Shown piece after piece: positions 1 to 1,104 of a DNA stretch of 64,000 nt (the stretch's first letter is position 1; each line of letters opens with the position of its first letter). Below the pieces are notes generated by a model that did not search any database, was not told the DNA's origin, and was given only the letters and a program-made list of their open reading frames with translations. The translations under genes and the position numbers were made by a program. The DNA is from Zygnema circumcarinatum SAG 698-1b (lineage: Eukaryota > Plantae > Zygnematophyceae), in NCBI GenBank assembly GCA_037447605.1, contig CM074816.1:511873-575872 (forward strand), written 5' to 3'.

Positions 1-565
1 CGAAGCTGTGTTACAGCTAGTCGAGTTTGCCGTACCACTAGCCATGGCCGAACGTAAGCAACCCAGCATTTCGTTGCTAATTGGCAGCTTGTTTCTTCGT
101 CACTTTTCAGTGCGAATTGAGCTTTGCTAGACCTGAATGCACAGACGTGCAGTCTAAGCTTACCGACGGCGAGAGCATGCGAATAGCGAACCTGACGTGA
201 ACTTGCTTCGCTTCGTAGTGCAAGCGAGATGCTCTTTGCAACCACACTTTGTGAAAATGCCTCGTGGAGCATCCACGCCCAGCACCGAATTCTGGGTTCA
301 GTTGATATATATAGCCCCTTCTCAGGCAGGAAGCGCGTATCAAATTGGTTAACCTGACCATAGACATTCCAGCTAAGAAACATCACTGAAGTGCTTGTTT
401 TATGCAACATCTGAAGTTTCTTTGACCCAATAGCTCGCTGACACAGCAGGTTGTTAGCACTAGCTGGCGCATTGGGTTGCTGCGTATATTTCCAAAAGGA
501 AGTCAGACATATACGATGGTGCTTGGGTAAGCTACCAAACCGGAAGTGTGCTTCACTCGGCGCAC
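1..565 (-). mobile_element. 5' part of a mitochondrial-type group II intron (cox1i511 position) with an ORF in frame with the upstream cox1 exon; runs off the window edge
   Basis: Minus strand reads ...TTT ATT ACC A|GTGCGCCG... with GTGCG at 565-561, the canonical group II 5' end. By Marchantia numbering the exon ends at cox1 codon 170 plus one base (nt 511). I translated the exon frame by hand and found no stop from 565 to position 1 (about 188 codons). Confidence 0.8.
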
Positions 566-566
566 T

Positions 567-818
567 GGTAATAAAGTTAATTGAGCCTAAAATGGAAGAA
601 ATTCCGGATAAGTGAAGACTAAAAATGGCTAAATCTACAGCTCCACCTGAGTGACTAGTTATACTGCTTAAAGGAGGATAAACTGTCCATCCTGTTCCAG
701 CACCTACTTCCACTAAGGCTGAACTCAATAAAAGTAATAATGACGGCGGCAATAGCCAAAAACTAATGTTATTTAAACGTGGAAATGCCATATCGGGGCT
801 GCCTATTAAAATAGAGAC
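567..818 (-). pseudogene. cox1: Mitochondrial cox1 exon fragment (NUMT), about codons 87-170
   Basis: Translates to [84 protein letters not shown] (84 codons, no stop), with AT-rich organellar codon use. Missing from the ORF track, probably because the frame has no stop inside the window. Confidence 0.96.
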
Positions 819-1104
819 TCCGTTGAACATCAACTCTTTGCAAAAATTTACATGCATCCAAATTGTACTGTCTTGTCTTGTTTCAGGTAAAATGAGGCAA
901 ACTTAGGTCCGCATCAACTGAAACCCCCTTCGTTTGCAAACACCGTCACAACTTCGTCAAGACTTTGCAGGGTTTTCGGAAATAAAACTTTTTCAGAGAA
1001 CAGACCGTCTTGCTGTCTTTCAAATGTGCAAAGCCTCTTTCAAATGTACGGAGCGCAACATGAGAGTGCGAGAGAGCCATGGCGCAAGAGAGAGAGAGCA
1101 GCAC

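Follow-up and report, generated by a model that had tools for sequence, protein, structure and literature searches.

A piece of mitochondrial DNA from the alga itself, made up of part of cox1 exon 1 and at least the first 565 nt of the group II intron cox1i511g2, very probably sits as a NUMT in intron 2 of an expressed nuclear RWD-domain gene, in sense orientation and carried passively. The fragment occupies the left end of the window, the 64,000-nt stretch of Zygnema circumcarinatum SAG 698-1b DNA that was analysed as a whole (contig CM074816.1, positions 511,873 to 575,872), and continues beyond its edge. The insert is very young, or at least not distinguishable from present-day mtDNA, as there are 0 differences in 814 nt. 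The initial annotation, made from the letters of the sequence, had described a young NUMT with a retained intron, and this description is borne out by the organelle-level depth and perfect identity of positions 1-814 and by a junction recovered at nuclear depth in three studies.

Results

Sequencing runs

The stretch is contained in 20 public runs of a single organism from eight studies, and the contigs of four of these runs, each from a different study, were placed on window positions 1-3000. X2 and X6 are DNA runs, both dating from 2019 and belonging to different studies. X7 and X20 are taken as RNA because these two are the only ones to carry the spliced joint of the host gene.

The cox1 exon fragment and its intron

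A minus-strand frame beginning at 833 enters a plant-type cox1 segment (…GSINFIT) and then runs stop-free to base 1 of the window. Pfam COX1 covers residues 6-90 of this frame, and the exon fragment closes on …INFIT followed by a single A, its last base at 566 (Table 1). Differences from the cox1 exon of L001, a mitochondrial contig of a relative, fall on codon positions 1/2/3 as 4/1/27, which is the signature of coding sequence. The cox1 identity given by the initial annotation is thus upheld, with its count of 84 codons up to 818 to be amended to 83 codons spanning 814-566. Since the fragment is continuous across cox1 nt 263-511, it has no intron at 375 or 395, in agreement with the earlier proposal of a donor lacking i375 and i395, and the accompanying statement that this stretch of cox1 needs no C-to-U editing also holds.

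RNA contigs of X7 and X20 join base 566 to the next cox1 exon, which fixes the mitochondrial 5' splice site at 566|565. After …ATT ACC A the spliced RNA continues as CC GTG TTT AAT ATG CGT GGG CCT GGT ATG (T V F N M R G P G M). The intron itself opens with GTGCG at 565-561, directly after the last exon base, and its insertion codon is shared with L001, whose exon 1 spans exactly 511 nt counted from the ATG. The length of the L001 exon and the splicing observed in RNA together confirm that GTGCG follows cox1 nt 511 exactly, as had been read from the sequence. Over approximately its first 290 nt the primary sequence of the intron is conserved with the same-codon introns of L001 and of L002, a 118-kb mitochondrial contig of a third organism, so that the comparison spans three organisms. 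The L002 intron at the i511 codon is ~1.7 kb long and carries a domain V/VI directly before the exon MRGPGM…, with an Rfam Intron_gpII score of 47.3 bits against a cut-off of 40.

Covariance models and folding were silent on the visible part. Rfam over positions 1-900 returned no intron match at gathering thresholds or at E<=10, nothing for the D1-D4 models and a lone chance match to a snoRNA. A plain minimum free energy fold of the 565 nt (z -0.89) was not better than those of shuffled sequences, and a search of the visible part for an EBS1/IBS1 pair found as the sole 6-nt complement of the exon end a site at intron nt 29, which is an untypical place, and hence no clear pairing. Despite the silence of Rfam, the in vivo splice site, the domain V/VI of L002 and the ~290-nt alignment put the assignment to group II and to position i511 on secure ground, and the site, the 5' GTGCG, the splicing and the orthologues in related mitogenomes identify the intron as cox1i511g2. 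This intron is assigned to family F14 and is present in liverworts, mosses, lycophytes, Coleochaete and Zygnema (PMC10012718); the liverworts and mosses named by the initial annotation are therefore correct and the range is wider. In the algae Zygnema and Coleochaete it carries maturase frames, and the supplementary tables of the same paper give no size for the algal introns (PMC10012718). Two short pieces of the intron, window positions 316-347 and 332-374, also occur in other contigs, from DNA and RNA runs alike, whose sequence departs from the window on either side. This suggests that the motif has further copies in the mitogenome, for instance in a family member paralogous to this intron.

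The retained intron bears directly on the route of transfer. Unspliced intron RNA is present in the X20 data (rec9, depth 12.4 as against 53.9 for spliced cox1) and related mitogenomes encode reverse transcriptases, so that an unspliced cox1 precursor transcript might have been reverse-transcribed and integrated. We consider this route improbable, given that a retained intron fits direct capture of DNA, that the visible end of the insert bears neither poly(A) nor a target-site duplication, and that the start of the fragment within cox1 exon 1, at gene nt 263, is arbitrary. The earlier argument that the intron marks a transfer at the DNA level accordingly stands, with cDNA of an unspliced precursor as a minor alternative.

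The host gene

The insert interrupts a gene whose first two exons translate to MTDYEQEQEMEIEALQAILMDDIE, predicted from its sequence to be the N-terminal helix of an RWD domain. Pfam RWD aligns over profile positions 1-20 with an E value of 0.0023, which is below the cut-off for a stretch of which ~24 codons are visible, and a PDB search with the 21-aa piece from host exon 2 found no match. The initial annotation had placed the insert downstream of exon 2 of RWDD1 on the same strand; RNA splicing supports the placement, and on the sub-threshold Pfam match the gene is here called an RWD-domain gene. In X7 rec28 positions 1356-1695 are joined to 1170-1105, and RNA contigs pass from 1105 into an exon beginning EIDSSDTSWT…, which occurs nowhere in 1-1104. 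Intron 2 therefore holds the insert, runs off the window and is still removed correctly. In X7 one low-depth contig extends without splicing from 1134 in exon 2 across the intron as far as 785 and represents pre-mRNA that includes the junction.

The nuclear context of the insert is thus given by a spliced GT..AG intron (1355-1171), an exon 2 that is joined downstream and further spliced genes to the right. The long 5' leader, immediately upstream of the start codon, contains telomere-like or telo-box-like repeats (AAACCCTAA units in gene sense) at 1395-1432 and 1597-1623, and 1399-1435 is flagged as a repeat where contigs break. On the plus strand a spliced alpha/beta-hydrolase-like gene at 2647-4725, with its first exon-exon joint at 2842 in RNA contigs, begins ~950 nt from the 5' end of the RWD-domain gene and is transcribed divergently from it. 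Further along the window lie an RNA-methyltransferase-like multi-exon gene from 6117, a nuclear tRNA-Gly(GCC) gene at 17707-17784 and, on the minus strand at 33244-33386, a TPP riboswitch aptamer (58.2 bits, above the Rfam gathering score) that presumably belongs to a thiamine-biosynthesis gene.

Table 1. Features of the insert and of the host gene in window coordinates.
Feature	Position	Strand	Remarks
Mitochondrial group II intron cox1i511g2, 5' 565 nt, NUMT copy	1..565	minus	cut by the left edge of the window
cox1 exon fragment, NUMT copy	566..814	minus	gene nt 263-511; 83 codons, 249 nt; Pfam COX1 E 1.3e-18
Right-hand junction, mitochondrial insert / nuclear DNA	814..815	.	nuclear-depth contigs begin with a 30-nt overlap, 785-814
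Host intron 2, nuclear part	815..1104	minus	donor GT at 1104-1103, sequence GTGCTG; extends across the insert and past the window edge
Host exon 2	1105..1170	minus	spliced joint 1356|1170 in X7 and X20; absent from DNA runs
Host intron 1	1171..1355	minus	GTGAGC…CAG, GT..AG; removed in RNA runs only
Host exon 1	1356..1695	minus	long leader with telo-box-like repeats; start codon 1362-1360; RNA contig X7 rec28

Read depth and the insertion junction

Depth separates the two parts of the locus. In X2 and X6 it is ~5,000-6,500 over 1-814 and ~30 from 815 onward, mitochondrial reads being ~180-fold deeper than nuclear ones, and in both of these independent DNA runs the mitochondrial-depth contigs match window 1-814 with 0 differences. 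After 814 the high-depth path leaves the window, and its minus-strand translation, …IGGFGNWFV, supplies the cox1 residues that precede the fragment. As the path continues into upstream cox1, it is the true mitochondrial genome. The homology of the window to a relative's cox1 by blastn also ends at 814, and the mitochondrial part does not reach 818-835 as the initial annotation had it. The comparison of 1-818 with the organism's mtDNA that had been proposed there proves letter-perfect over 1-814.

Contigs of nuclear depth cross the junction in three studies (X2 rec6, 785-1689, depth 29.9; X6 rec22, 785-1692, 31.7; X7 rec27, 785-1134, ~8), and every one of them starts at 785. This is the k-1 overlap of 30 bases expected from a fork in the de Bruijn graph at 814|815, and its appearance in three independent data sets means that reads joining mitochondrial bases to the nuclear flank exist and that the junction is real. 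At the level of short-read contigs, the proposed check of junction and read depth thereby has a positive outcome, with mtDNA depth confined to 1-814. Of the insert's two junctions the window contains the right-hand one. Identity between the nuclear copy and mtDNA limits what short-read graphs can prove there to 30 mitochondrial bases, so that the 814 nt as a whole rest on the assembly, and the perfect identity could in part be a polishing artefact of the ~180-fold excess of mitochondrial reads. Contig starts at -668, common to three runs, were considered as a left junction and rejected, as many other shared break points lie along the mitochondrial path.

An assembly chimera, in which abundant mitochondrial reads were misjoined to a nuclear contig and the chromosome holds no insert, would explain why 1-814 is identical to mtDNA at ~180 times the depth of nuclear DNA and why short-read graphs follow the nuclear copy no further than 30 nt. 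Such an error is nevertheless very unlikely when contigs from three studies (X2, X6 and X7) all end at exactly 785 with nuclear-type depth, when none of the four runs placed yields a contig leading from 815 into any other sequence, and when the X7 RNA contig crosses the same point unspliced from 1134 to 785. In addition the window lies inside a long scaffold, which reaches at least 35 kb further left, and not at a scaffold end. A genuine chromosomal insertion of mtDNA remains the preferred reading.

The open frame through the intron

The exon frame carries on into the intron without a stop for 187 codons, to base 1 of the window, in close agreement with the ~188 codons first noted, and the other two frames contain 7 and 14 stops. 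With 8.4 stops expected and the exon frame open in 1 of 20,000 dinucleotide-preserving shuffles, the open frame is not due to chance. In the conserved part of the intron the differences from L001 are distributed over codon positions 1/2/3 as 17/13/17, compared with 4/1/27 in the exon, and on this pattern the visible intron codons appear to be under no protein-level constraint. The visible 187 codons gave no Pfam match of any kind at E<=1, and so none to the RT domains 0-7 or to domain X; domain IV falls left of the window.

Protein searches lead back to the same RNA. A word search of 5.8 billion proteins with the 187 residues retrieved only P0001, a JGI metagenome protein that lies on L001 and is cox1 exon 1 read into the intron at the same codon. 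Among 1.84 billion representatives, searched exhaustively, there were three matches near E 5e-4, including P0003, which is located on L002 and is likewise a translation of the same intron; the other two, considered as possible relatives, were rejected as spurious repeat proteins. RNA-type differences, the absence of a domain and matches restricted to translations of the same RNA indicate that this stretch is conserved as RNA (domain I) and is merely kept stop-free here.

The corresponding introns of the two relatives differ in what follows. In L001 the intron frame stays open for 282 codons and ends in hairpin repeats without any RT. Its region 378-4158 comprises cox1 exon 1 and ~560 nt of the intron, then palindromic hairpin repeats, two tRNA genes (1829-1911 and 2037-2124) and nad4L (3270-3674), and it lacks domain V as well as a downstream cox1 exon; possible readings of this arrangement are trans-splitting of cox1i511g2, truncation of a pseudogene copy or an error of assembly. 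In the i511 intron of L002 the exon frame closes after 8 codons, and a maturase remnant is found at 5771-5956 (Intron_maturas2, Pfam E 7e-7). The L002 cox1 region (4270-10267) also holds, after the i511 intron, a probable group I intron at 6602-7039 (Rfam 49 bits, cut-off 50), and the next group II intron has an 893-aa ORF (COX1 + RVT_1 + GIIM) continuous with the upstream cox1 exon.

The insert might be read as a complete intron whose intact exon-fused RT/maturase ORF already works as a nuclear maturase gene or is on the way to doing so. In favour are a frame without stops up to the left end of the window, an undecayed copy, sense orientation inside a transcribed gene and the maturase frame reported for algal cox1i511g2 (PMC10012718). 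This reading is nevertheless extremely improbable: the visible 187 codons bear no RT or X motif and no protein-type constraint (17/13/17), the only relatives retrieved from 5.8 and 1.84 billion proteins are this intron RNA in translation, the insert brings neither promoter nor start codon context nor targeting peptide with it, the host intron is removed normally in RNA, and the related introns of L001 and L002 have lost their ORF.

Discussion

Our results support the passive insertion of a piece of the alga's own mtDNA into the intron of an expressed nuclear gene. Direct capture of DNA is the established main route for NUMTs, and most likely a fragment of mtDNA was taken up during end-joining repair of a chromosome break. 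The captured piece would run from cox1 nt 263 to the exon end at nt 511, through at least 565 nt of cox1i511g2 and then beyond the window. In the nucleus the copy is carried along passively, being transcribed within the pre-mRNA of the host gene and excised together with the spliceosomal intron, and in the mitochondrion the donor intron is spliced at 566|565 with the exon frame kept free of stops.

A maturase ORF in domain IV is usually translated as the continuation of the upstream exon. The stop-free 5' part seen here agrees with ribosomes that leave the exon, translate the 5' ribozyme domains and so reach such an ORF, an architecture displayed by the 893-aa frame in the neighbouring cox1 intron of L002; RNA structure would then shape the upstream intron codons, whose one requirement is the absence of stops. 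It is conceivable, but on balance unlikely, that the insert reaches several kb further left and there holds the whole of cox1i511g2 with an undamaged exon-continuous RT/maturase ORF, placed in sense orientation within a transcribed nuclear intron. A complete maturase ORF further left would be modestly interesting raw material for nuclear maturase genes, and a whole intron with an undamaged ORF would amount to a snapshot of the very first step from a mitochondrial maturase to a nuclear gene.

As it stands, the insert is a genuine, ordinary NUMT, and the donor intron and its maturase frame are already published (PMC10012718). The case shows that DNA continues to flow from mitochondrion to nucleus in this streptophyte alga, which is closely related to land plants, and that mtDNA inserts can land harmlessly in the introns of expressed genes. 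It also calls for caution in annotation and read mapping, since mitochondrial reads swamp this locus. Beyond such bookkeeping its significance is small.

NUMTs are commonplace, and in kind the present insert does not differ from those of plants and algae: it consists of the organism's own mtDNA, its flank is single-copy nuclear DNA of nuclear depth, and it is an arbitrary gene fragment in a spliceosomal intron of an expressed gene with no sign of function. It stands out from them in its 0/814 visible decay and in the inclusion of a group II exon-intron boundary. With cox1i511g2 of family F14 (Zumkeller & Knoop 2023, PMC10012718) the intron shares the site after cox1 nt 511, the 5' GUGCG, splicing in vivo and orthologues in related mitogenomes with domain V/VI and a maturase remnant; the difference lies in this being a nuclear copy of which the first 565 nt are visible. 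In nad4i461g2 of Coleochaete scutata and Zygnema circumcarinatum the maturase frames are continuous with the upstream exon (PMC10012718). Our intron resembles these exon-continuous ORFs in an exon frame that is stop-free through the 5' ribozyme domains and in its RNA-type conservation, and departs from them in that the window shows stop-free 5' codons only, any RT/X region lying to its left. Exon-continuous maturase ORFs of mitochondrial group II introns are also represented by aI1 and aI2 of yeast cox1. Nuclear maturase genes derived from the ORFs of mitochondrial group II introns are exemplified by nMAT1-4 and by the transfer of matR in Pelargonium. Those genes are free-standing, driven by promoters and equipped with targeting peptides, in contrast to the insert described here, which is an unprocessed fragment of mtDNA inside the intron of another gene.
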